From sequence record MK250019.1: a DNA stretch of 64,000 nt; one strand, 5' to 3'. Position 1 is the stretch's first letter. The number at the start of each line of letters is the position of its first letter. The notes beneath the pieces are model-generated. The model ran no database searches, had not been told where the DNA came from, and worked only from the letters and a program-made list of their open reading frames with translations. Made by a program: the position numbers and the translations under genes. Below are positions 12,300 to 34,491 of the stretch, piece by piece.

Positions 12300-12394
12300 A
12301 ATTATAATAGTGTAGCGGTTCGCACGCCCGTTGGTAAAACGGGAAGGGTTTATGTTTGAAAGCATATTAGGGGTTCGACTCCCGCTTATAAACA
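12300..12394 (+). tRNA. Degenerate tRNA-Tyr(GTA)-like gene
   Basis: D loop AGCGGTT, stem CCCGT/ACGGG with loop TG-GTA-AA (G33), long variable arm, T loop GGTTCGACTCC; acceptor only 5 bp and bulged T stem. Confidence 0.5.
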
Positions 12395-20933: not shown

Positions 20934-21565
20934 TTAATATGCACTAAAACGTTCACGATTCATTTGATTATAAAAATATATAAAAGTACCATCTATGGCA
21001 CCACGTATACATGCATTACTATAATATTCTGCTTCATTTGTTAATGAAAGTGTATGGATTCCTGTTAAATCATCAATAACTTTAAATAATACTGTTTTTT
21101 ATTAAAAATATCATCATTATTTTCCATATAATCAGGCAATGCTATAATAGCTATGCAGTTAGTAACATCAATAAATTTACCTATTAATTCTCCATCTTTA
21201 TCATAAATTGAACCACATGTATTTCCATCATATTTCTTTTCAAATCCATATGAGTCAAATTTTTCATCTAAATATTCTCCTACAAAAACACCATTAGTTA
21301 CATTAAGTTTTAAATTCATTATATTATTTCCCCACCAATCAGTATCATATTGATGATTTAATATTTCCTTATCATCTAATAACCCTTTCATTTTATTAAA
21401 AAATACATCATTAGGTATTGTCGAGTAATTAAAACGTAAAACCTATTTCTTAAACTAGTTTGATGCTTGTATTAATGACTATGATTCATTAAGCTTATTC
21501 TTTACTGCTTTAGAAACCGATTTCATTATAGATTCATAAAGTACTTTCTTTTGATTTCTATTCAT
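20934..21565 (-). CDS. Hypothetical protein with KKVLYESIM leader; apparent frameshift at A6 tract (21095-21100)
   Basis: ATG 21565; frame 0 stops at TAA 21065, while the -1 frame continues KTVLFKVIDDLTGIH..RFSAY to TAA 20934 next to the terminator. Confidence 0.55.
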
Positions 21566-21642
21566 ATTGATTTTTTTAATTTTCATTTATATATTTATAC
21601 TAAAAACATAATTATAGAAATCCTATAACCTTATTTACATAA

Positions 21643-22119
21643 TCAGAATAATGCATCACATTTATTCTCTTTTATCGGACACCAATTTTCATAATCCCAT
21701 TTGAAAAAATCTGTGCAAACGAGATTATTGTTTAATATTGATTTTGCTGTATCAACATTATAATCTATATTAAGTTTAGATAACATTTCTAATATTCGTT
21801 CATGTGTTTCAATGACATTATCTTGAATTAGTTCTGTTCCGTATGTATGTTCTAATGCTTGTTGCCATGTTGAACCATGTTGTATCTTATTATATATTAT
21901 ATAGATAACGAAATTTCCATTTCCGAATGAAGGCTCTAAGAAATTTGATTCTGTATTATTCCACTGTTCTTCTGAAACTTTATCAGACATACGCTTAACT
22001 AATTCAAACGGAGTGAAAAACTCATTTGAACCACCTGAACCCTTTCTTCTGGAAACTCGCTCTTCCGTTGCATAACTATCTAAACTCAAAAACTATTCTA
22101 TATCAAAACTACTATTCAT
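21643..22119 (-). CDS. N6-adenine MTase N-terminal (SAM-binding) half
   Basis: Motif X EFFTPFELV and motif I FLEPSFGNGNF; no NPPY motif; ATG 22119 with TAG at codon 9. Confidence 0.8.
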
Positions 22120-22191
22120 ATTAATTATATAACAGCATATAAATTTTGTTTTATTTATTATAAAAATAAGTTAAACCCTAATTTTCATTTT

Positions 22192-22286
22192 AATGGTTTT
22201 TACGATGTTAAGGATTTTCTTGAGATGAAAAATGAAGATATAATTAAGATGAATTAGTGAAAGAAATTTGATGTTATATTGAGTAA
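22192..22286 (+). repeat. Outer inverted repeat IR-A, left copy (95 bp, 94/95 identical to 24958-25052)
   Basis: Direct comparison; the single mismatch gives TGA (22258-22260) here versus GGA in the expressed copy. Confidence 0.95.
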
Positions 22287-23139
22287 TGCCCCATATGATA
22301 ATGGATTACATGAAAAATTTGAAGCAAAATATTTTGATATATGTGATGGATAGATTTGTTGGGTAAGTCCATTAAGCTTTTTATTGGGTAAAAAACAAAA
22401 AACAAAGATAACACATTAGTTAGATAAGTATATTTGTGATATAGAACAGATAAATGGAAATGAACATTTTGATGCAAATATCGGAGGAAATATGGGTATC
22501 GTATTCTGTGATATGGCTGATGAACATAATGAGCATTATGTTAAGTTTGATGGTAAACAATATAACAAATGTGAAGAAATAACGCCATATAGTGATAATG
22601 AAACAATGAAATATATTATCAATACAATATTAACAAAATGTAAGGAAGATTGTCTAGATAAACATTGTAAATTAACAGAGAAAATATTGCCTAATGATGG
22701 TCGAAATAGATATTTAGAAAATAATCCTAATAAAAATTGGTTTATAATACAATTACCATTAATCAGAGGAGGAAAAAAAGAATTGGATTATTCATCGTTG
22801 TTTACGAAAACAATGAATGATAAAATTAGAACATACAATGAGTTTGAACAACCGGGAAAACATTTAATGTATTTTGCATTTAATACATCAGAAGAAGCAG
22901 TTAATTTCAAAAAATATTGTATGTCTGATATATGTAGATTGATGCTGTATTATTTCAAACCTAATTTAAGTTTAGGTAAAGGTGAATTAAAGTATATACC
23001 TTGGTTCAATTTTACTGATTCTATGTTTGATGGTTCTGCAACAAACGTTAACGAAAATATATACAAATATTTTAATTTTGGAGAAAAAGAAAAAACAGAA
23101 ATTAGATCAGTTATATCTGATTATTATGGTATATGGTAA
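22261..23139 (+). CDS. Silent alternative MTase-catalytic + specificity cassette C
   Basis: KKFDVILSNAPY..FDGKQYNKCEEI..YIPWFNF..DYYGIW, collinear with the expressed C-terminus, in register with IR-A. Confidence 0.8.
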
Positions 23140-23143
23140 TAAG

Positions 23144-23171
23144 AAAGGTTAGGAAATTAATCCTAACCTTT
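23144..23171. terminator. Hairpin at convergent cassette ends
   Basis: AAAGGTTAGGA-AATTAA-TCCTAACCTTT. Confidence 0.75.
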
Positions 23172-23250
23172 TCTTATATTGTAATAATCCGGTAAAAGTT
23201 CTTCAATATGTTTACGTATTTCATCAGAGATATTATATTTGTTAAATAAG
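23157..23250 (-). pseudogene. Orphan cassette C-terminal tail D
   Basis: LFNKYNISDEIRKHIEELLPDYYNIRKG(Q)D*, nearly identical to the tail of cassette B. Confidence 0.75.
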
Positions 23251-23270
23251 TTTCTTATTTAACAAATATA
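23234..23270. repeat. Perfect 17-bp palindrome joining tails D and E
   Basis: TATATTTGTTAAATAAG-TTT-CTTATTTAACAAATATA. Confidence 0.9.
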
Positions 23271-23368
23271 TTCCTGAAATGGAGGATGGAATAACTCGTA
23301 ATAATATAATAAAACATATTCAACATATATTACCTGATTATTATAATATAAGAAATAATGAAAACTAA
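23254..23368 (+). pseudogene. Orphan cassette C-terminal tail E
   Basis: LFNKYIPEMEDGITRNNIIKHIQHILPDYYNIRNNEN*. Confidence 0.7.
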
Positions 23369-23389
23369 TTGTTTTCATTATTTGAATTT

Positions 23390-23445
23390 CTATTAATCAT
23401 AATAGACGCTATATAATTTATGATGGTAAAGAATATAATAAATGT
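23390..23445 (+). repeat. Inner inverted repeat IR-B, left copy (19 bp perfect, 48/56 overall)
   Basis: CTATTAATCATAATAGACG.. matches the reverse complement of 24672-24727. Confidence 0.9.
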
Positions 23446-24060
23446 AGTGAAATAAGTTCTACTAGCAATGATAGTTTATTATAGAACTTTAAAAATATAA
23501 TAACATCGATATGTAATAAAGATAATTTAGAAAAACATATGAGAGCTATACCAGATGATCCTCATTTAAAGAAATATTGGTATAATAATTAGAATGTAGA
23601 TGAATATTGTATAAAAGTTGATTTAATAAGAGGACACGAAAATAAAAAAACAGGTTAGCATAAAGATGATTTTTATACAATAATTTCTAATAATGAAAAA
23701 ACAATATTATCATCAATAGGAAATTTTAAAGATTTAATTAAAAAGAAAAATAATTTAAATAAGAGATTAATAAATTTCTATATTCCATCTATTAATTTAA
23801 ATATTACAAATAATATTATAAATTATTTAAAAACAGATTTTTGTAGAGCAGGACTATTATTCCAAAAAATTAATACAAATATGTATCCAAATGTTTTTAT
23901 TTATATTCCATGGTTTGATTTTTCTAATAATATATTTAGTAAAACACCATCAGAAATAGATGATTATTTATTTACTAAATATAATATATCAAATGAAATA
24001 AGAAAACATATTGAAAAATTACTTCCGGATTATTATAATATAAGAAAAGGTAGAGATTAA
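23392..24060 (+). CDS. Silent, start-less alternative specificity cassette B
   Basis: Open (TAG only) from INHNRRYIIYDGKEYNKC to LPDYYNIRKGRD*; in-frame TGA just upstream and no ATG at the 5' end. Confidence 0.8.
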
Positions 24061-24071
24061 TTCTCTACCTT
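24047..24071. terminator. Hairpin at convergent ends of cassettes B and A
   Basis: AAGGTAGAGA-TTAAT-TCTCTACCTT; both stop codons lie in the loop. Confidence 0.75.
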
Positions 24072-27000
24072 TATATTTTTATATTTGCTTATATCTAAAT
24101 TATAATAATTTGGTAATATCTATAATATATGATTTACAATATCTTGAGAAATATGATATTTTTTAAATAAGTATAAATCTATATTTTCAACGGTATTATT
24201 GAATATATTATCCGAAAAATTGAAATATGGTATAAATCTACATTCACCCCCTCCTAATTCACATGAATTTTGAATTAAATATAAACATATTCTACAAAAG
24301 TATGTTTCCGTATAATTAATCAGATTAATTATAAATTGTTTATTATTAGATGGAATATAATATTTAAGAAATATATTTCCTTTAGAATCTATTTTATTTT
24401 TTATATCTTTATATAAATATGGTGTTAACATATTTCTTGAAAGAATTCCAAAATTTATATGTTTTGTATTAGAATCAGTACCATTATATCTATTTAATCT
24501 TAAAATCCACCAATTATCATCAGGATTATGTTCTACAGGTGCATTTCCAAATTCATGAACATCAGGAATTCTTTTTACATGCATCTATAAATTATCTTTT
24601 AAATATAATGGTTGAACAATAGATTTAAATTTCATAAGTAATTCATCATTTGAATAACGAGAAATTTCTTCACATTTATTATATTTCTTTCCATCGAATA
24701 ATATATAACGTCTATTATGATTAATAGGATCATTTTCCTTAAACATCTAAATAGCCATTACACCACCAATATTAGCGTCAAAAAATTCATTACCATTTAT
24801 AGATTCTATATCACTATAATCCCATGTATCTACATGTTTAACAATATCTTTCTTTTGCTGCTTACCTAATAACCATGTACTAGGCTATACAGTACAAATT
24901 TCACTTCCTATTTCAAAATATTTTGCTAACATCTTATTAGCCAAATTATATGGTGGGTTACTCAATATAACATCAAATTTCTTTCCCTAATTCATCTTAA
25001 TTATATCTTCATTTTTCATCTCAAGAAAATCCTTAACATCGTAAAAACCATTTCCGTCAATGTCATTTATCTTCATAATTATACTTTCCGGAAGCTATAA
25101 AGTCTTTAAAATCTTTCTAATAAAATTAATAGTCAATTCACTACTTGGAACTATCTTACATTTCTTACAAACTTCAATTCCATAATCATTATATAACTAT
25201 ATAAAGAATTCACATACCTTTTCATTCACCAATAAAATACTATCCGCATTCTATACATCTTCACGACTCAACTTCTTTACCATCTTACTAGTCAAACTAA
25301 CAGGCGTTATAACTTCACTCTTATCTAATTTACCTAACTTACTAATAGCATTCTATACTCTCTATATCGCAGAAATATTCTTATCATCCAATAAACACTT
25401 CAACTGATATATCAACATATTAATCTACATTATTTCCGCATCATTCATACGGCTAATAATATCAGATAACTCATCAACATCAATCTTAAAATCCTTAGCA
25501 ATCTGTTCACACTCTGAATCACTACATACCAATTCTATATAATTCATTATATCCTCAGGAATGTTATTCATACAGATACAACTATACAAAACAGACTTTA
25601 ACATAGTCGTAAACTTCTTTTTCATAGTCTCTAATTCTGCCTTATCCTTCTTATCAGCTTTACTAACATTTCCAGACTTTTCCTATGCTTTATCTACAGC
25701 AGAATCAAATCCCTTATCATCAACAGGTAATTCATCACTTCCTTCTTTCTGTTCTAACTTTGTCTAATTCAATAATCCTTCAGACCATCTCTAAATATAT
25801 TTCATATTATCTAAATTATCCAAAAAAGAATTAAACTATTTCAAATCAATAGAATCTTCAATACTTCTTTCACGATTATACTTAACATATTGTTTCAATA
25901 AATCATCTGCTGTAATCTCATGAATTCCATTCAATATATGCTTTCCATTAGTATCATATACACTGTCTACATATGTAGGAACCTGTTCAATACTTTTATT
26001 GATAAGCTCCTTAACTTCTTCAATATTATGTTTCTTCGCTTTATCTGCACCACACTATGAAACAGCAGAATTTACCATCATATTATACATTCGATCAACC
26101 TTAAAATCAATCAAATATACATTAGCCTTCCTACAAATTTTCTGTTTCTGTTCAACACCATTTTCATCTGTATAAGTAGCATTACCTACATTTCTTGTAC
26201 ATAATCTGAATATTGCCTGATCATATTCCTATGGTGAAGCTGTATCTTTCATATAAAACATTGCATCCCATAAAGGAACACTAACACCTGTTAAAAATCT
26301 GTTTACTGTAATAGTTAAAGATCTCTTTCCTTTATTCTCTAAACTCCATAATGCCTGATTTAATGATGTAGAATCAGTCGCTTCAGGATCTAATTTTCTT
26401 GCATCTTTATCTTTTGCAGTTCTTCTTTCTGTCGCTACAATAATCTTTCTATATTCATCTGATTCAGGATCATCATCGATAATATTCTTATCAATTAATA
26501 ACTTTTTCAACACATGACAATCATCAATATGTGGAAGAACCATTATAATATGCTTAAATATTTCACCTTCCTTAATTCTTTTCTAATCTAAGAAACCTGG
26601 CATTTTATGATTATTCGCACCGAATATAGATTCCATTAATTCTGTAACAGCAGATTCATTTTCAAACTTATCATTTGAATTTTTAAATAAAAATGATAAT
26701 GATGTATTAATATCCTTATTTTTACTTAATACTTTTCTACATTCCTTTGTTAAATTCATACCGAATTTAATCATATTAGGAATACCAAAATAAGGAGATT
26801 TACTTTCATCAAAATTATCATCATTAATATGCTCATCTACCCATTTATCACGCGCATCAATCATATCAGAGAATCCAACATTAGAAATGATTTCCTTATT
26901 CTTATAAATTTCAGAAAATTCTCCGCTTGCTAATATATAATATGGTGTACCAGAACACTGTAATGTATACTTATGCTTTATTTCATCAACAGCTTTAGAT

Positions 27001-28376
27001 ATACGATCAACATCTTCAGCTTCTTTCTTTGCTTCTTTTAATTCTGTACTATTAGCTTCATATTTGTTTTTTGCTAAACCTACAGCAGTTCCATATACAT
27101 TTGAATGTGAACCATAATGAGTTTCATCTATAATAATCATATCTAATGGATATTCATCATTATATAAGAATTTATGTTTATCTTTAATTACATTTGCATC
27201 AAATCCTTTCTTACCGGCAAGATCCTGTAAAGTTGCAAATACAATTACAGTTTTACCTTCATCTATATACTGTTTTATCTTATTAGGATTTTCTTTCTTT
27301 ACTTCTTCATATACACCCTTTTGGTTTTTCTTTGATATAGTTAAACTTCCATCTGACGGTAATTCAATAAATACAAAATTATCCAAGAAATCTTCATGGT
27401 TAATATCATCTTTCCATGCAGCTCTTACATCCGCTTTCGCAGAGGTAACTAATACATATTTAATATCAGGTGCTTCTTTAATAATTTCATAACAACAATG
27501 GGTCTTTCCAAATCTCATAACAGCACTTAACAATAAATCTGTACATCCTCTCTTCATTGCATCAATAGCTTTGTTAATTGCATCCTGCTGTAATGGAGTA
27601 TTTTCATATGTATCAGCTGCACCATATTCATGATGTGTAGTTTCCTAATGAGTTTCTAAATCATATAGTTTACCTACATTCTTACCTTCTTTAATATCAT
27701 TTTTAATTTCTGTTATAATATCAGTAATAATCTTTTCATTTAATTCTGATGATGTATCCTTTATTTTCATATCTTTATATTTCATAAAGAATTCAGATGA
27801 TACATGAATATTTTCAATACCATCTTCTTTCGCTAATCTCTTAAATTCATCAAAATCAAATTTATTTGCAGGATCTTTTAAATTAGAATAACCATAACTA
27901 CGTGTACGCGCATGAACATTAAAATCCATAAAGAAAACTTTATGCATTGCATTATCTAACTATGTAGCAGTCCACCATCCTATTAATTTAGCATCACTAT
28001 AATACTTCTGCCATTGTTTAACACGCTATTCAGCACCCTGAACGGTATAACCGATCTTAATGGCATTAGGCGCATATTTTGTAATAAACGCATAAATAAT
28101 AGGTGTATTAGTCTGTAACAATTCTTCTTTAGAAAATGTCTGTCCTTTATGAATTTTATCCAATTCAGACTACATACCTAAATGATTCTGATAATCATTA
28201 TTTAATATATCATCAGAATCATTGTCTGTATCAGATTCATCATTAGTCTAATCATTATTCTAATTTAATTCATCCTATTTCTATCTGATACTTTCATCAA
28301 AATTATTTGACATATCTTCATTTAATGATATAATATCCATATATGTCTATATAAGTTTAACTATATAACTCTTCAT
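24057..28376 (-). CDS. Single-polypeptide restriction-modification-like enzyme: GIY-YIG/T5orf172 nuclease + SF2 helicase + N6-MTase + specificity domain (1439 aa, TAG=Gln)
   Basis: IIYAF..IKIGYT..RVKQW; SAVMRFGKT; IIDETHYGS; SGTPY; NRFLTGVSVPLWD; DQAIFRL; EVITP; FDVILSNPPY (24948-24959); five track ORFs in one frame. Confidence 0.85.
24672..24727 (-). repeat. IR-B right copy, inside the expressed gene
   Basis: Same codon register (ATT AAT CAT AAT AGA) as the left copy. Confidence 0.9.
24958..25052 (-). repeat. IR-A right copy, inside the expressed gene just before NPPY
   Basis: Encodes NGFYDVKDFLEMKNEDIIKMN(Q)GKKFDVILS. Confidence 0.95.
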
Positions 28377-28378
28377 AT

Positions 28379-28846
28379 TTAAAGGAATATTTTTACAATA
28401 TCACATGCTAATCCTTCTCTATCTTCAACAGAAATATAATTATAAATGATATAATTAAACATTACACTTTTAGAGTATTCTTTCTTTTTCTTACTCTTAT
28501 ACATCATCAAATCATAAACCTGATTTTCATTCAGATAATCATCAATAAGCCAATCCACAACATTATCTATATCATCTTTCTTAAGAAAAGTAACAATAAT
28601 ATCAAAATATGTTCCGTTAAACTCAATAGCCCTATTCGCAAATGAACTAAATCTTCCAAAATTCTTTTTCCTATAATCTTCAATAGATAAAGCTCCTTCA
28701 CCTGTTAATATCCTACCTGCAACATATCTTCTAATAGCCTTACTGGAATCTTTAATAAGCTTGCACATCGTTGAACCATCATCATTGGTATCTATAAGTT
28801 TCTGAACCCTCTTAAAATCCTTATTCTCAACTTCTGTATAAATCAT
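28379..28846 (-). CDS. Hypothetical protein
   Basis: 155 aa; stop lies 2 nt before the start of the R-M gene. Confidence 0.7.
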   Translation of the reverse strand: MIYTEVENKDFKRVQKLIDTNDDGSTMCKLIKDSSKAIRRYVAGRILTGEGALSIEDYRKKNFGRFSSFANRAIEFNGTYFDIIVTFLKKDDIDNVVDWLIDDYLNENQVYDLMMYKSKKKKEYSKSVMFNYIIYNYISVEDREGLACDIVKIFL

Positions 28847-28995
28847 AATTATAAAATCTTTATTAGTTAAACAAAAATTAGCATATGAAAATTCATATTA
28901 TTTATTAATAGAATTTTATATGTCTAATATATCATTATTTTATATAATATAATAATTAAAAAGTCAATATATAAATAAAGAAAAATATTTTATAT

Positions 28996-29973
28996 ATGAT
29001 AAAGAAACATCCAATTTTACATGGCGCATGTATTGATAATTTTCATAAATTATATAATGCAGATTTATATGAATAGTATGGTATATTAAATTATGAAGAT
29101 CCGACATTTCGTTTAAAAATTGAAGTAATTGCTACAGAAATATATAATACTACAAAAAATGCAACTAAACCATATTATAAAGAATTTTATGTAAAAAATG
29201 TATATAACTTTATATGGAAATTAAATATTGTCGTAGATTCAACATTTAATTTTTTATCAGTATTTACTCCTGAAGTTGAATTTAAATATAATTATTAGAA
29301 TCATATAGTTGAACATGCAGCAATATTTATAAATCCATTAAAATTTTATAATATAGATTCTCTTGTATCTGCAATATTTCATGAAATAAAACATATATTT
29401 GATCATACAATAACAATTACAAATGATATTCAATAGAAAGAAGTATTATTTAGAGATTATTTGGTACAAGAATATTAGTTATACGATAAACCAGAAATAA
29501 CATTCACATCATATAATAAAAATTTAATACAAAATAATGAAAGTTCTATTATGGAATATTTTAGTTCTTTTATTGATTATGTTGCATCTTCAGAATGGAC
29601 AGCATATTTAGAAAATATCGATAATAGTTATAAACATGAATTAAATAATGTTAAAAGAATAAAATTTTTAAAAGAGAAATATCCATATATACAAATTAAA
29701 AAGTTTATATATTTCAATATTCAATCAGGTAATTACTTATTAATATATTATAATATTGAAAATTATATTAATGATATATTAGAATTAAATTTAAATATTA
29801 TAAATAAAAAATATCAGCGAAATTTTAAAGATATATATGGTGTGAATACTATACAGCAAGTATTAAAAATATATTTAAAAAGAATTCAAAAAGTAAAAAT
29901 ACGAGCAAAGAAAATATTTAATAATGTATATAAAAATTCATATTTAGAAAAAACAATAAAGAGTGAATAGTAA
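28996..29973 (+). CDS. Putative zinc metallopeptidase-like protein (HExxH)
   Basis: ATG 28996, AIFHEIKHIFD motif, in-frame TAGs, ends TAG-TAA inside a terminator stem. Confidence 0.6.
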
Positions 29974-29999
29974 CCCAAATACTATTCACTCTTTTCATA

Positions 30000-31904
30000 T
30001 TATAGTTTCTCTATAATTTTATCTCTCTCTTCTTTCGTTATTATAATAACAAATTCCTTATTAGAACCAAAATGAGATCTGTTTGTCAATGTTTCTTTAA
30101 TATATGGAACATATTTAGTAATCAAATCATCTGTCACAAATAAATATTTCTCACAATCATAATTCTTCAAACAAATATCTATCCAACCATCACAATCCCT
30201 ATTAACAGACTCAACACCAGGCCAATTCTCAATATTCCCATATGGTGAACATGTCAATAAACACTGATACTTACCTGTATTCGCACAACAATCAGCAATA
30301 TCTAAATCACATGTAACATTACATAATAAATCAGAATCAATAACAGGTTTCAAAAATTCATATATTTCCTTACTTTCCTTTACACTCGATTCACATAAAT
30401 CTCTACCTATATATGATTTACAACATGCTAATGTTCCTATCATTCTACCACTATATCCGGAAAACGGATCAAATATTGTATCAAACTCATTAAGATATTT
30501 CTTTATAAGATATTTTGCAAGATCAGGTTTAAAATAAGTAACTGTCTGAAACATCCTTGATGCATTCAATCCTATTCCATAAATAAAATCAGGAACATAA
30601 CATTCATCAATAAAATGTTTCCTTCCTTCTGATTTATACCAATCTGCAAATTTCAATCTGTTAACAAGAAGTTTCCTAAATAATTCCTTATCTGACTTAA
30701 TTTTATTCCATCCTTCATATGGTGATATACTGTTATCAATATGTGCATATATAATAGACTTATGAAACTTCTTTATAATTTTAGAAGGTGTTCGCAAATC
30801 TCTATCTTTTGATTTAATATATTCAAATTCTTTAATACATTCTTCATCAGTAACAGGATGTACAGTAGAAGGTGGAAAATATATATCCTGAATCTTTTCA
30901 AACTCTCTGTCTAAATACTTATCAACAACTTCATTACAATGTGCTGTCGTGCAATTCGCGCTCTTACATAAATTATCTTCTGTCTCTTCTTCACCGTTTA
31001 CAATAACCGGTTTATATTTAGGTTTACTTAATAATTCAGAAATATTAGTATATTTGTTAACCGATTTCTCTTTCTCTTTCTTCTTTTCTTCAGGTTTATC
31101 TTCTTTTTTAGCCTCTTTATGTTTAGTCTCTTTAACTTTCTTTTGTTCTTTAACTGGAAATGCTTCTTGAATACTGGTTTCTACTAAATCCTGTTTTTCA
31201 ATGATTTCATTTATATTATCATCAACAGTATATTTAACTAACAAAACAGGTTTATATTTAAAACGCGGTGCTTTACTGGCACAACTTGTAGAACAATATT
31301 TCGTATACAATTTTGTATTCTTTCCAATCCAAATAACAGGTTTTCCGCAAACAGGGCATTTAGGTTTCTCATAAACACCTTTCCTTATTCGCTGAACAGT
31401 CTCAAGAATAGAAGATGAATCATCAAATCTATTATTCAAATAATCTAATATAATAGGATTATCTATAAGTTCAACATACTTGTCATATATAATATGATTA
31501 ATAACAACATAATCATTCATATATTCAGAATTATCTATAGACTTCTGCCATTCCTTAAATCTATCATCTCGATGTTCTGCAATTTTAAAACTGTCTTTAT
31601 ATTGTTCTCTACATAATGAATTATACTTTGACTTACATATAGATGAATCACATGTTTCTTTATAACCGTTTCCTATTCTTCCACTCCATCTTGCTTTTTT
31701 ACCACAAAACTTACATGTTACAACAGAATGCAAATCATGAATAACATAATATAACCTCTCTAATATATCTTCATGATGTGTTAAAAAATCTGTGAAATCA
31801 TAAACTTCTTTATTTACATCTTCATTATTTTTAACTATATAAATTAACTGTCTTAAACTTATTTCTTTATTATTATATTGTTTTAAATAATCATTTAATT
31901 GCAT
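30000..31904 (-). CDS. DNA methyltransferase with N-terminal zinc-finger repeats
   Basis: CKFCGKK and CPVCGKP modules; C-terminal TIFDPFSGYSGRMIG (SAM binding) and LTCSPY. Confidence 0.7.
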   Translation of the reverse strand: MQLNDYLKQYNNKEISLRQLIYIVKNNEDVNKEVYDFTDFLTHHEDILERLYYVIHDLHSVVTCKFCGKKARWSGRIGNGYKETCDSSICKSKYNSLCREQYKDSFKIAEHRDDRFKEWQKSIDNSEYMNDYVVINHIIYDKYVELIDNPIILDYLNNRFDDSSSILETVQRIRKGVYEKPKCPVCGKPVIWIGKNTKLYTKYCSTSCASKAPRFKYKPVLLVKYTVDDNINEIIEKQDLVETSIQEAFPVKEQKKVKETKHKEAKKEDKPEEKKKEKEKSVNKYTNISELLSKPKYKPVIVNGEEETEDNLCKSANCTTAHCNEVVDKYLDREFEKIQDIYFPPSTVHPVTDEECIKEFEYIKSKDRDLRTPSKIIKKFHKSIIYAHIDNSISPYEGWNKIKSDKELFRKLLVNRLKFADWYKSEGRKHFIDECYVPDFIYGIGLNASRMFQTVTYFKPDLAKYLIKKYLNEFDTIFDPFSGYSGRMIGTLACCKSYIGRDLCESSVKESKEIYEFLKPVIDSDLLCNVTCDLDIADCCANTGKYQCLLTCSPYGNIENWPGVESVNRDCDGWIDICLKNYDCEKYLFVTDDLITKYVPYIKETLTNRSHFGSNKEFVIIITKEERDKIIEKL

Positions 31905-31936: not shown

Positions 31937-32797
31937 ATGTTAAAAAAACTCATTTGTTTTATAATATTAATGGATTTGTTTTCAAAGACTTTCATATTAA
32001 ACATATATATAATATATGAAACAAAATTTATAAAAAATAGAGTTCTTGCATTAGATTTAAATCCAAATTATATTGGATGGTCTATAGTTGATTGGAAATC
32101 TGAGAGTGAATTTGATGTTATTAAATCAGGTGTTTATTCAATTAAAAAATTGAATGACATAGATTTTGGTTTAAAAAATAAAGGATATAGTTCAGAATCT
32201 AATGAAAGAAAATATATTTCTGTTAAAAGAAATTATGAGACTTTACAAATTGTAAAGAATATAGTGAATAAATCTATATATTACAAATGCCAGATTATAT
32301 CTATTGAAGATTTAAATATTAAATCAAGTGATAAAGAATTAGGTAAACGATTTAATAAGTTAGTAAATAATTCATGGTGTAGAAATGCATTTGTGAATAA
32401 TTTAACTAAAAGATGTAATATTCATAATATTAAATTATTGAAAGTGAAACCTGAATATTCTAGTTTTATAGGAAATTTCTTATATAGAAGTTTAAATTTA
32501 CCGGATATGATATTAGCTTCAATAGAAATAGGAAGACGCGGATATGAGTTTTATAATCAATATATAAGTAAAGTAAAAGAAATTAAAAAGAATATAGTAA
32601 GACCGAATTTAAGTATATTTCAAAAGTTGTATCTTAAGTCGTTGGAAGAATTTAATTTACAGCCGATATACAAGGATTTGATTGAATTATATTACTTCTT
32701 CAAAAAGTCGAAACTTAAATATCGACTTTCTATAGATTCATTCAATCTATAGTTTTCTAGCTTTTATTCGAATACAAGTTTAATTGTATTTATATAA
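31937..32797 (+). mobile_element. tnpB: TnpB/Cas12f-like RuvC nuclease (IS200/IS605 accessory type), N-terminally truncated
   Basis: RVLALDLNP (RuvC-I), ISIEDL (RuvC-II), VKPEYSSFIG, LPDMILASIEIGRRG (RuvC-III); TAG 32750 read through to TAA 32795; true start uncertain. Confidence 0.7.
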
Positions 32798-32874: not shown

Positions 32875-34491
32875 TTGGATATATTAAAGAAGAAAACTTC
32901 TTTTTTAGATGAACATAATCCTTCTAATTCGGAACGTGTATATTGCTGGTATAATAATATAACAGAAATTCAGAAATGCCCTCATTGCGGTAAATCCAGA
33001 AAATTTCATAAATTTACATATGGATATTTTCCTACATGTGGTTCAAAAGAATGTCGTGCAAAATCCGTTGTATATGGAAATAAGTTTAATCATAATTTTG
33101 TAGAAATACAAAAGAAAATGAGAGAAACATATGCAAAAAACCATAATGGTTATACGCATAATATGCAAGATCCAGAATTTAAAAAGAAGTTTTTTGATGA
33201 GTTTAAAAAGAAACATAATGGTATATCATGTGGTGCTCAGACAGAATTAGCAAAACAAAACAGAGAGAAAACAACATTAGAAAAATATGGTTGTAAATAT
33301 GCTTTATCATCTAAAGATGTAAGAGATAAAATATATGAAAAATATGGTGATGATGCAAAAATTAAATTTGCAAAAATCGCTACTGATACACGGAAAGAAA
33401 ATACATTAAATAACATTATTAAAAAGATTGAAGAATTAAATTATACATATATTTCAAATAATAATAATTTATTTAAAATTAAATGTAATAAATGTGGACA
33501 TATAAATGAAATTACAAGACAAGCAATAAACTATTACTATAGGAATAGTAATCATATATATTGTAATAAGTGTGAATATAAAGAATTAACATATAGGAGT
33601 AATTTTGAAAAAGATGTTGTTAAAGAAATAGGAAATATTATAAAAGAAACTAACTATTCTATTATAACAAATAAACATATTTATAATGGTAAAGAACATT
33701 TTGAAGTTGATATATTGATTCCTGAATTAAATTTAGCAATAGACTGNNNNNNNNNNNNNNNNNNNNNNNNNNNNNNNNNNNNNNNNNNNNNNNNNNNNNN
33801 NNNNNNNNNNNNNNNNNNNNNNNNNNNNNNNNNNNNNNNNNNNNNNNNNNNNNNNNNNNNNNNNNATGATATTTATAAGAAAGACATTATATTAAGTCGT
33901 TTATCTAGTAAATTAAAATTAAATAAACATATATATGCAAGAAAATGTTTAATTAAAGAATTGACTCCTAAATTATATAGAGATTTCTGTAATGAAAATC
34001 ATTTACATGGATCTGTTAATGCTTCAATAAAAGTAGGATTATTTTTTAATGATGAGTTAGTTGAAGTCGTAGGTTTAGGGAAATCTCGTAAATTAATTGG
34101 TAATAATAAAGATGAAGTTTCATATGAATTATTACGTTTATGTACAAAGAAATATATTAACGTTATAGGTGGGTTTTCTAAATTAATGAATTATGTTATT
34201 AATAAGTTTAATATAAATTCCATATATAGTTATGCAGATTTATCATGGATAGATTTAAAAGGAACATCATACATTAATAGTGGATTTTATATAGATAAAG
34301 TTATTGATAATGAATATTGGTGGGTTGTAAACAATATAAGAGAGAATCGATTGAATTATACAAAGAGTAAATTGGTATCATTAGGGTATGATAAGCATTT
34401 AACAGAAATTGAAATAATGCATTCTTTAAAGTATTATAGAATATTTGGTCCTGGAAATTTAAAATTTATATATAAAAAGAAAAGTCTCTAA
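32875..34491 (+). CDS. Hef-like homing endonuclease (zinc finger + PD-(D/E)xK-type domain)
   Basis: CPHCGK module, TLEKYG repeat, EVDILIPELNLAI, ARKC..NENHLHG, YELLRLC..VIGGFSKL; antisense to the capsid gene; spans an N gap. Confidence 0.7.
   Translation: MDILKKKTSFLDEHNPSNSERVYCWYNNITEIQKCPHCGKSRKFHKFTYGYFPTCGSKECRAKSVVYGNKFNHNFVEIQKKMRETYAKNHNGYTHNMQDPEFKKKFFDEFKKKHNGISCGAQTELAKQNREKTTLEKYGCKYALSSKDVRDKIYEKYGDDAKIKFAKIATDTRKENTLNNIIKKIEELNYTYISNNNNLFKIKCNKCGHINEITRQAINYYYRNSNHIYCNKCEYKELTYRSNFEKDVVKEIGNIIKETNYSIITNKHIYNGKEHFEVDILIPELNLAIDXXXXXXXXXXXXXXXXXXXXXXXXXXXXXXXXXXXXXXXXXDIYKKDIILSRLSSKLKLNKHIYARKCLIKELTPKLYRDFCNENHLHGSVNASIKVGLFFNDELVEVVGLGKSRKLIGNNKDEVSYELLRLCTKKYINVIGGFSKLMNYVINKFNINSIYSYADLSWIDLKGTSYINSGFYIDKVIDNEYWWVVNNIRENRLNYTKSKLVSLGYDKHLTEIEIMHSLKYYRIFGPGNLKFIYKKKSL
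33747..33865. other. Assembly gap (N run)
   Basis: 119 N characters. Confidence 1.

Follow-up and report, generated by a model that had tools for sequence, protein, structure and literature searches.

The enzyme gene and its partner

The 64,000-nucleotide (nt) stretch analysed here (the window, to which coordinates refer unless another record is named) comes from Prevotella phage Lak-A2, an unannotated 541-kb circular megaphage genome from human faeces (record MK250019.1; window positions 22000-28500 correspond to 499299-505799 of the record, with 100% identity). Our subject is a locus in which the gene for a large enzyme of restriction-modification type is followed by a small methylase gene, mN, with two silent cassettes (B and C) lying between the two genes. 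Both cassettes are homologous to the C-terminus of the enzyme and are encoded on the opposite strand.

Translated with table 11, the region yields only short open reading frames (ORFs); with TAG read as glutamine it yields a single ORF of 1439 amino acids on the minus strand (24057-28376), in which 27 TAG codons are in frame. Code 15 has been established for Lak-A1 and Lak-A2 (Devoto et al. 2019; PMC6784885). When the protein was aligned with full-length relatives, of which at least two were confirmed as standard-code translations, the TAG positions most often faced glutamine, invariantly so in one column. The published code and the residues found in relatives together justify this reading of TAG. 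An exact-protein look-up identified a 541-kb ENA contig that is 100% identical at the enzyme gene and has the same neighbours.

The ORF, domain searches and fold matches assign four parts to the expressed protein (P0001), all encoded on the minus strand: a nuclease, a superfamily 2 (SF2) motor, an N6-adenine methylase fold and a target-recognition domain (TRD). The nuclease motif region (residues 93-146; 27939-28100) is of the T5orf172, GIY-YIG type (PF10544, E 2e-4, 22.3 bits against a cut-off of 20); the same family is matched by the relatives P0025 and P0083, relatives additionally give weak Eco57I matches, and the region has the invariant residues Y95, G109, R118 and E195. The motor, a double-stranded DNA (dsDNA) translocase, occupies residues ~255-860 (25797-27614; PF04851 ResIII, E 6.6e-8, residues 259-437). 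For residues 1-1000 the AF2 model reached a mean predicted local distance difference test (pLDDT) score of 66, with the motor core mostly at 70-90; its best Foldseek match is the Type ISP enzyme LlaBIII, followed by EcoR124I HsdR and SauUSI.

Residues 1000-1439 were modelled with a pLDDT of 92.9; the model comprises a complete Rossmann methylase fold and, after it, a C-terminal domain, and its best Foldseek matches are CamA, M.BseCI, M.TaqI, BREX PglX and HsdM. The model and these matches assign a gamma-class N6-adenine methylase fold to residues ~1040-1215 (24732-25259). The C-terminal domain is the expressed target-recognition domain, TRD A (24060-24731), which ends in an alpha-type tail (...LPNYYNLDISKYKNIKVEN). 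The NPPY motif (24948-24959) is present and is invariant in the family alignment, and a profile search matched METTL5 and HsdM at this point. The internal S-adenosylmethionine-binding motifs are degenerate: motif I reads ILLVNEKVCEF (ILLVNEKxGEF in the family), and in motif II an invariant SS replaces the acidic residue. A sequence search of solved structures (PDB) gave no match for the whole protein or for mN; the N-terminal profile gave only weak UvrB/HsdR matches.

The Pfam matches to T5orf172 and ResIII, taken with the LlaBIII/HsdR and CamA/TaqI folds, give the Type ISP order of nuclease, dsDNA motor, methylase and TRD. They support a single-polypeptide enzyme of restriction-modification type, in agreement with the initial annotation of this DNA, made by a model from the letters alone, which had described a nuclease-helicase-methyltransferase. 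The Type ISP enzymes LlaGI and LlaBIII (PDB 4xqk) carry a nuclease, SF2 translocase, gamma N6-adenine methylase and TRD in the same order in one polypeptide. They differ from the Lak-A2 enzyme in their Mrr-like, PD-(D/E)xK nuclease, in place of which we found T5orf172 and no PD-(D/E)xK family; the Lak-A2 enzyme is also set apart by its degenerate motifs I and II and by the separate mN that always accompanies it. Assignment to the Type IIG/IIL (Eco57I/MmeI-like) class is not indicated, the protein having a ~600-residue SF2 motor and a PF07669 score of 21.2 bits, below the cut-off of 25.3. M.TaqI, CamA and M.BseCI share the N-terminal Rossmann catalytic domain with NPPY and the C-terminal DNA-recognition domain, but they are stand-alone enzymes with a canonical motif I, whereas the Lak-A2 module is fused to a nuclease and a motor and, in relatives, is split or permuted with mN. 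That the enzyme restricts or methylates DNA, and at which targets, we infer.

The partner gene mN (21643-22119, on the same minus strand as the enzyme gene) encodes a stand-alone methylase N-lobe of 158 amino acids (phrog_21201 'DNA methyltransferase', E 2e-17). Motifs X, I, II and III are canonical (FFTP, EPSFGNGNF, GTE and TDFF), and the protein ends where motif IV would start. In every related locus that extends past the methylase-TRD module mN is found downstream of it, and a natural C-lobe-TRD-mN fusion occurs in P0124 and in phrog_11371; gene neighbourhood and these fusions suggest that mN is a conserved partner of the enzyme. The degenerate internal N-lobe and the separate mN may constitute a split or permuted methylase system. 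When an N-terminal extension of the type found in Lak-B1 was compared with the internal N-lobe by hhalign, only the KFD..NPP segment aligned. In one related locus that has no cassettes (L005), mN follows the enzyme gene immediately, so the cassettes appear to be insertions between two partner genes.

Silent cassettes and inverted repeats

Both cassettes were recognised by translation of the plus strand. Cassette C (22192-23139) encodes a linker, an alternative methylase C-lobe (NAPY, type-2 DNGLHEKF...) and TRD C; cassette B (23392-24060) encodes an alternative TRD with a beta-type tail (...LPDYYNIRKGRD) and has a stop three codons upstream. Neither has a start codon, and both enter repeats shared with the enzyme gene in the same codon register, so the start-less, inverted, in-register cassettes described in the initial annotation are confirmed by the translations. 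The shared anchors that it listed (DGKxYNKC, IPxFxF and LPxYY) are likewise real and are conserved family-wide; the TRD cores are only ~36-40% identical in residues. About 224 codons are open in cassette B and 292, after a TGA, in cassette C. In DNA of 27% GC such frames have chance probabilities of 4e-7 and 5e-9, respectively, which implies that the silent cassettes are kept open by selection or are very young.

The related phage Lak-C1 carries cassette B as a 99.5% identical protein, silent there too; no relative of this cassette was found in IMG/VR. Cassette C has NAPY in place of NPPY. P0014 and P0016 conserve type-2 lobes with NAPY; in P0002 a lobe of the same type, there with NPPY, belongs to the active enzyme. 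Cassette C is absent from Lak-C1 and from the deeper of two haplotypes in wastewater.

That haplotype was seen in wastewater Logan contigs (X1 and X2), where 22166-23385, comprising cassette C and two tail fragments, is replaced by 6 nt (ATATAA); depth is ~13 for the C-less haplotype versus ~4 for the cassette-bearing form. Lak-C1 has a third filling of the same site, 817 nt with an unrelated ORF of 150 amino acids.

The repeat IR-A links the methylase region of the expressed gene to the 5' end of cassette C. Its full extent is 108 nt with 95% identity (22192-22299 and 24945-25052); in its core of 95 nt (22192-22286 and 24958-25052), 94 positions are identical, and identity collapses at both edges. 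The first codon of NPPY marks the end of the core arm in the expressed gene; the arm in cassette C holds the sole core mismatch, a TGA stop (22258-22260) where the active gene has GGA. The core shows no synonymous change over 31 codons, and just outside the repeat residue identity is only 36%. Identical residues share the same codon in 28 of 29 cases, against a background of 68%. Exact inverted matches within 21000-30000 reach 66 nt; the maximum in 100 first-order Markov simulations, which set the chance level, was 24 and the mean 16.

The second repeat, IR-B, links the methylase/TRD border of the expressed gene (INHNRRYILFDGKKYNKCEEI; 24664-24727) to the 5' end of cassette B (23390-23453). 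It extends over 64 nt with 83% identity and has an exact core of 19 nt. Here identical residues share the same codon in 13 of 17 cases, against 65% expected from codon bias, so protein conservation and codon bias explain the nucleotide identity. Both repeats claimed in the initial annotation are therefore present, the first with sharp edges and the second no more alike than its protein would make it. As an in-register inverted repeat that bounds a variable segment and is more alike than its surroundings, IR-A is clear; IR-B alone, at 83%, is indecisive.

Cassette B and the expressed gene converge tail to tail in a junction unit (23904-24211), in which their stops overlap by 4 nt and which lies between 3' anchors IP[WY]F[DN]FS. 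The anchor arms (23905-23964 and 24174-24233) are identical at 39 of 60 positions in Lak-A2. At the convergent junction a hairpin (24046-24072) is predicted to act as an intrinsic terminator on both strands, and a hairpin scan located another terminator-like structure directly after cassette C (23143-23172). Two tail fragments follow, between cassettes C and B. F1 (23145-23249, minus strand), convergent on cassette C, is a beta-type tail remnant (...NISDEIRKHIEELLPDYYNIRKGQD, then a stop) and forms an inverted repeat of 105 nt with the tail of cassette B (81%). F2 (approximately 23270-23370, plus strand), recognised by translation, is a beta-prime tail remnant (...GITRNNIIKHIQHILPDYYNIRNNEN, then a stop) of the type found in P0016 and P0009. 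A promoter scan was uninformative in this AT-rich DNA, giving fewer matches than shuffled sequence.

This arrangement would permit several exchanges. A crossover at the IR-B arms would invert 23390-24727, so that the methylase would be followed by TRD B together with its tail and the bidirectional terminator. A crossover at the IR-A arms would invert 22192-25052 and install module C (C-lobe and TRD); if it fell within the 66 nt upstream of the TGA mismatch, the stop would be imported and a truncated null enzyme would result. The third anchor pair, at the TRD/tail border, would allow the tails alone to be flipped. A swap of the catalytic motif together with the domain by way of cassette C, as put forward in the initial annotation, fits the cassette layout, but the TGA in its repeat and the variant NAPY motif count against it.

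Recurrence in relatives and the case for inversion

Clustering at 50% gives ~300 representatives of the enzyme family, which was encountered in phage or metagenome contigs only. Of 50,697 phage genomes, six Lak records contained members; a scan of 185,579 prokaryotic species genomes, limited to a few peptide patterns, gave no relatives.

Three layouts are seen. In layout (a) the module is followed by a convergent, start-less cassette, with mN after the cassette wherever the contig reaches far enough (Lak-A2; Lak-C1 and L021; Lak-B1, L017 and L022; L006, L010, L013, L023, L024, L025 and L029). In layout (b) units with their own start codons stand in tandem on one strand (L014, L015, L019/L046, L033 and others), and layout (c) has a single module (L005, L011, L047 and others). 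In L014, L015, L019/L046, L033 and L027, at least two tandem C-lobe-TRD units of ~300 amino acids, each with its own ATG (conserved ...LNKVMKFD...), precede a single mN; this suggests that several specificities are expressed together, not alternately.

Start-less inverted cassettes occur in six further Lak-like or more distant megaphage lineages, and the bounding repeats were measured in four of these. The inverted repeat is 69 nt in Lak-C1 (84%), 88 nt in Lak-B1 (95%, with 25 consecutive identical codons and then an abrupt drop) and 151 nt in L006 (82%). In L010 there are three nested repeats, two of 48 nt (both 100%) and one of 58 nt (86%), and they encode identical peptide blocks separated by diverged ones; the L010 homologue, from a standard-code contig of 413 kb, is 31% identical. 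The position and sequence of the repeats drift between lineages with layout (a), yet the repeats are maintained as identical blocks beside diverged sequence, which points to concerted evolution in which the copies exchange sequence. In Lak-B1 the expressed gene (456 amino acids) is without nuclease and motor and keeps the cassette, the repeat and mN, an architecture that indicates the methylase-TRD part as the target of diversification.

The L010 repeats (L010:11519-12601) lie between the TRD and a convergent start-less cassette of 185 amino acids, a cleaner multi-inversion design than that of Lak-A2.

Genomes that share 98-100% identity elsewhere also differ in whether they carry the locus, whose site is a hotspot of gain and loss. 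Comparison of window 21699-28073 with Lak-A1 (L003) shows that mN, the cassettes and the enzyme gene beyond its first ~100 codons are cleanly deleted from Lak-A1; Lak-B2 (L007), B5 (L009), B7 and B8 are without the locus, and Lak-B4 keeps mN only.

These comparisons bear on the view that the cassettes are decaying remnants of once independent same-strand C-lobe-TRD genes, scrambled and no longer switching today. Such an origin fits the tandem stand-alone units with start codons in L014, L015, L019/L046 and L033, the stop in cassette C and the tail fragments beside it, and the deletion hotspot, the locus being absent from Lak-A1, Lak-B2, B5, B7 and B8. It fits poorly with frames that stay open for 224 and 292 codons in AT-rich DNA, with a 95-nt repeat that has one mismatch and abuts sequence of 36% residue identity, and with a start-less convergent design that recurs in lineages only 31-50% identical; we consider it quite improbable.

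The convergent tails indicate how the locus may have changed. In each convergent pair an alpha tail (...LPNYYNLDLSKYKNIKVEN) faces a beta tail (...LPDYYNIRKGRD). The expressed gene ends in the alpha tail in Lak-A2, Lak-C1 and L013 and in the beta tail in Lak-B1, L006 and L023. The junction unit of Lak-A2 is closer to its counterparts in the latter three when inverted than when collinear (83% versus 70% for Lak-B1, 78% versus 65% for L006 and 78% versus 70% for L023). In the same comparisons the flanks are collinear, and mN is 94% identical to that of Lak-B1. The simplest reading of these alignments is that the junction unit inverted during divergence of the lineages, between the IP[WY]F[DN]FS anchors.

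In an alternative of the pilS/pilE type, the cassettes would donate sequence, either through non-reciprocal gene conversion or through exchange between genomes on co-infection; reciprocal inversion would not occur, and the inverted orientation would only guard against deletion. Between Lak-A2 and Lak-C1, which are ~99% identical elsewhere, the expressed TRD core has been replaced by other sequence, not inverted, while silent cassette B stays put, which is replacement from outside. Sharp identical blocks are also typical of gene conversion, and inverted isomers are lacking among near-identical genomes. Such donors do not, however, account for a junction that has flipped as a unit, with overlapping stops and terminator, in three lineages, nor for a strictly convergent layout with a bidirectional terminator, which is a requirement of reciprocal inversion; the nested repeats of L010, moreover, match classical multi-inversion loci. 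We judge conversion without inversion to be unlikely.

We favour, with a probability of about 0.6, a recombination-driven specificity-cassette locus that works by inversion, a shufflon in layout, and that serves a Type ISP-like phage enzyme. Switching in Lak-A2 itself is likely but unproven. The invertible shufflon of the initial annotation thus gains from the anatomy, its recurrence and the junction flipped in three lineages, but not from the contigs, the recombinase search or the orientation of near-identical genomes.

Several observations weigh against this reading. The tandem same-strand units show that spare modules can exist without inversion. IR-B is weak in both Lak-A2 and Lak-C1 (83-84%) and does not rise above protein constraint. 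Cassette C may be decaying, since it has a TGA in its repeat and a NAPY motif and is missing from Lak-C1 and the deeper wastewater haplotype. Methylation by the 1439-amino-acid protein is uncertain because its motifs I and II are degenerate. Neither IR-A nor IR-B nor the tail anchors showed an inversion joint when 21700-25600 was compared with Logan contigs of four runs; these were short contigs from mixed wastewater and gut populations, not reads, and make a weak test either way. Near-identical genomes, moreover, agree in orientation: Lak-A2 with its ENA twin; Lak-C1 with L021; and Lak-B1, B3, B6 and B9 (100% identical) with L017 and L022. The comparison of orientation across Lak-like genomes proposed in the initial annotation thus found both junction orientations between lineages, not among near-identical genomes.

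The same contigs contained one opposite-strand joint (23931/24619), at non-homologous positions, and in wastewater contigs several TRD variants branch exactly at the inner edge of IR-B. Profile scans gave no Lak-A2 isomer among 4 IMG/VR and 33 JGI metagenome loci.

Recombinases and known inversion systems

The initial annotation had also called for a search of the whole genome for a serine or tyrosine invertase. None was found: the entire 541-kb Lak-A2 record has no match to PF00239, PF00589 or PF07508 (resolvase/invertase, tyrosine recombinase and large serine recombinase). The positive control of this search was a RecA/UvsX-like gene (435353-435988 of the Lak-A2 record, L016; PF00154, E 1e-14). 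It is the only recombinase-type function found in Lak-A2 and a candidate driver of repeat-mediated exchange. The genes neighbouring the locus gave no recombinase matches, and no resolvase was found in Lak-B1.

A resolvase gene 3.8 kb from the enzyme gene of Lak-C1 was considered as the invertase and rejected, since it belongs to an IS607-like insertion of 1.27 kb that Lak-A2 does not have. The insertion (L054; MK250029.1 17420-18687), at a site corresponding to window 32003-32017, encodes an IS607-like serine recombinase with an N-terminal helix-turn-helix (PF00239, E 4.5e-22, three in-frame TAG codons), after which a TnpB-like ORF begins. This places a mobile element within the genome of a code-15 megaphage.

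With no serine or tyrosine recombinase but a RecA-like protein in Lak-A2, homologous recombination during replication, or the action of a host enzyme, is most likely. In the inversion reading, the copies would be exchanged by homologous recombination in the pool of replicating phage DNA, or by such a host enzyme. Exchange would probably be infrequent and would diversify the population, not act as a fast invertase-driven phase switch. Recombination at spnIII is reportedly, to go by the title of one paper, independent of all known pneumococcal site-specific recombinases.

A programmed phase switch of the hsdS type, driven by a site-specific invertase from the Prevotella host or by an unrecognised phage recombinase, would also produce this layout, which equals that of known invertons. 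Bacteroidales hosts carry many master-type invertases. Master invertases of the Mpi and Tsr0667 types are enriched beside bacterial programmed inversions (Milman et al. 2023; PMC9881135), so trans-acting invertases do exist in bacteria. The repeats at the phage loci, however, differ in position and sequence between lineages and thus do not represent a conserved short recombinase site; Lak-A2 has no gene of the three recombinase families, the Lak-C1 resolvase belongs to the IS607-like insertion, and orientation is fixed in all assemblies. We regard an invertase acting in trans as very improbable.

The likely benefit of inversion would be a changed DNA specificity, whether of methylation that protects against diverse Prevotella restriction systems, of a nuclease directed at host or rival DNA, or of both. 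A fuller proposal is offered tentatively, as possible rather than probable: in Lak-like megaphages, a multi-repeat shufflon without a dedicated invertase may reprogram the DNA specificity of a new Type ISP-like family, composed of GIY-YIG-type nuclease, motor, methylase-like reader and TRD, that works with mN as a SAM-binding lobe encoded separately. The outcome would be a heritable, reversible choice of methylome or nuclease target, which would track Prevotella restriction systems or attack rivals, and cassette C would represent an OFF state or an alternative-lobe state, depending on the position of the crossover relative to the TGA.

Switching of DNA specificity by inversion is known in bacteria, where it serves defence and epigenetic bet-hedging; the phage invertible segments known to us change tail fibres. 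The invertible hsdS loci of Streptococcus pneumoniae (SpnD39III/ivr), Bacteroides fragilis and Mycoplasma pulmonis resemble the Lak-A2 locus in having one expressed module with silent, 5'-truncated, inverted copies, in-frame inverted repeats that border variable TRD segments, and several repeat classes that allow combinatorial shuffling. In Lak-A2, by contrast, the variable part is the C-terminus of a single polypeptide of 1439 amino acids, not a separate S subunit, and one cassette replaces half of the methylase catalytic domain. The Lak-A2 locus is further distinguished by a megaphage carrier with no detected integrase gene and no recombinase gene in locus or genome, and by an inversion that we infer.

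The comparison with hsdS made in the initial annotation has the right logic but is too narrow. Inversions that swap the C-terminal specificity part are already known in bacterial Type IIG/Eco57I-like, BREX PglX and DISARM fusion proteins, with recurring fusion genes (Milman et al. 2023; PMC9881135). Those systems, which are closer to the Lak-A2 locus than hsdS, are chromosomal defence systems with recombinases enriched nearby and with inversions confirmed by long reads (PMC9881135). The Lak-A2 locus, unlike them, is phage-borne, has no recombinase and is read from its layout.

The Gin/G segment of Mu, the Cin/C segment of P1 and the prophage Rin shufflons are also phage-encoded and also swap alternative C-terminal specificity domains by inversion. 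They switch tail-fibre or receptor-binding proteins, however, by means of a dedicated serine or tyrosine invertase and short sites; in Lak-A2, which lacks an invertase, the part exchanged would be the domain by which a methylase/nuclease recognises DNA. The locus differs from shufflons of the R64 type in having neither a tyrosine recombinase of the Rci family nor short 19-bp sfx sites, its repeats being coding segments of 64-108 nt that vary between lineages.

New here are the megaphage carrier without detected integrase or invertase, the lack of a dedicated recombinase, a cassette that carries half of a catalytic domain, and an enzyme family with mN. In keeping with the initial annotation, which knew of no such locus in a phage, we found no mention of it in the papers on Lak and jumbo phages that were consulted; the genome analysed by Iyer et al., Lak-B8, is one of those without the locus. 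If the inversion reading is correct, a specificity-inversion device would stand on the virus side of the arms race, and such loci could persist without an invertase of their own. It would also define a modular family, encountered here in phage and metagenome contigs only, whose methylase-TRD units are whole, split, tandem or permuted and share mN as a universal small partner. The orientation of the segment at 22.2-25.1 kb would offer a concrete marker for the population dynamics of Lak phages in metagenomes. Even without switching, the locus documents intense diversifying recombination on a phage DNA-recognition domain.

Two features elsewhere in the window may be recorded. Positions 33747-33865 are 119 consecutive N, a masked stretch or a gap, on either side of which the ENA twin contig aligns. 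A tRNA-Tyr gene (GTA anticodon; 12301-12393, plus strand) is 93 nt long, which exceeds the standard tRNA length and may fit the intron-containing tRNAs reported for Lak phages.

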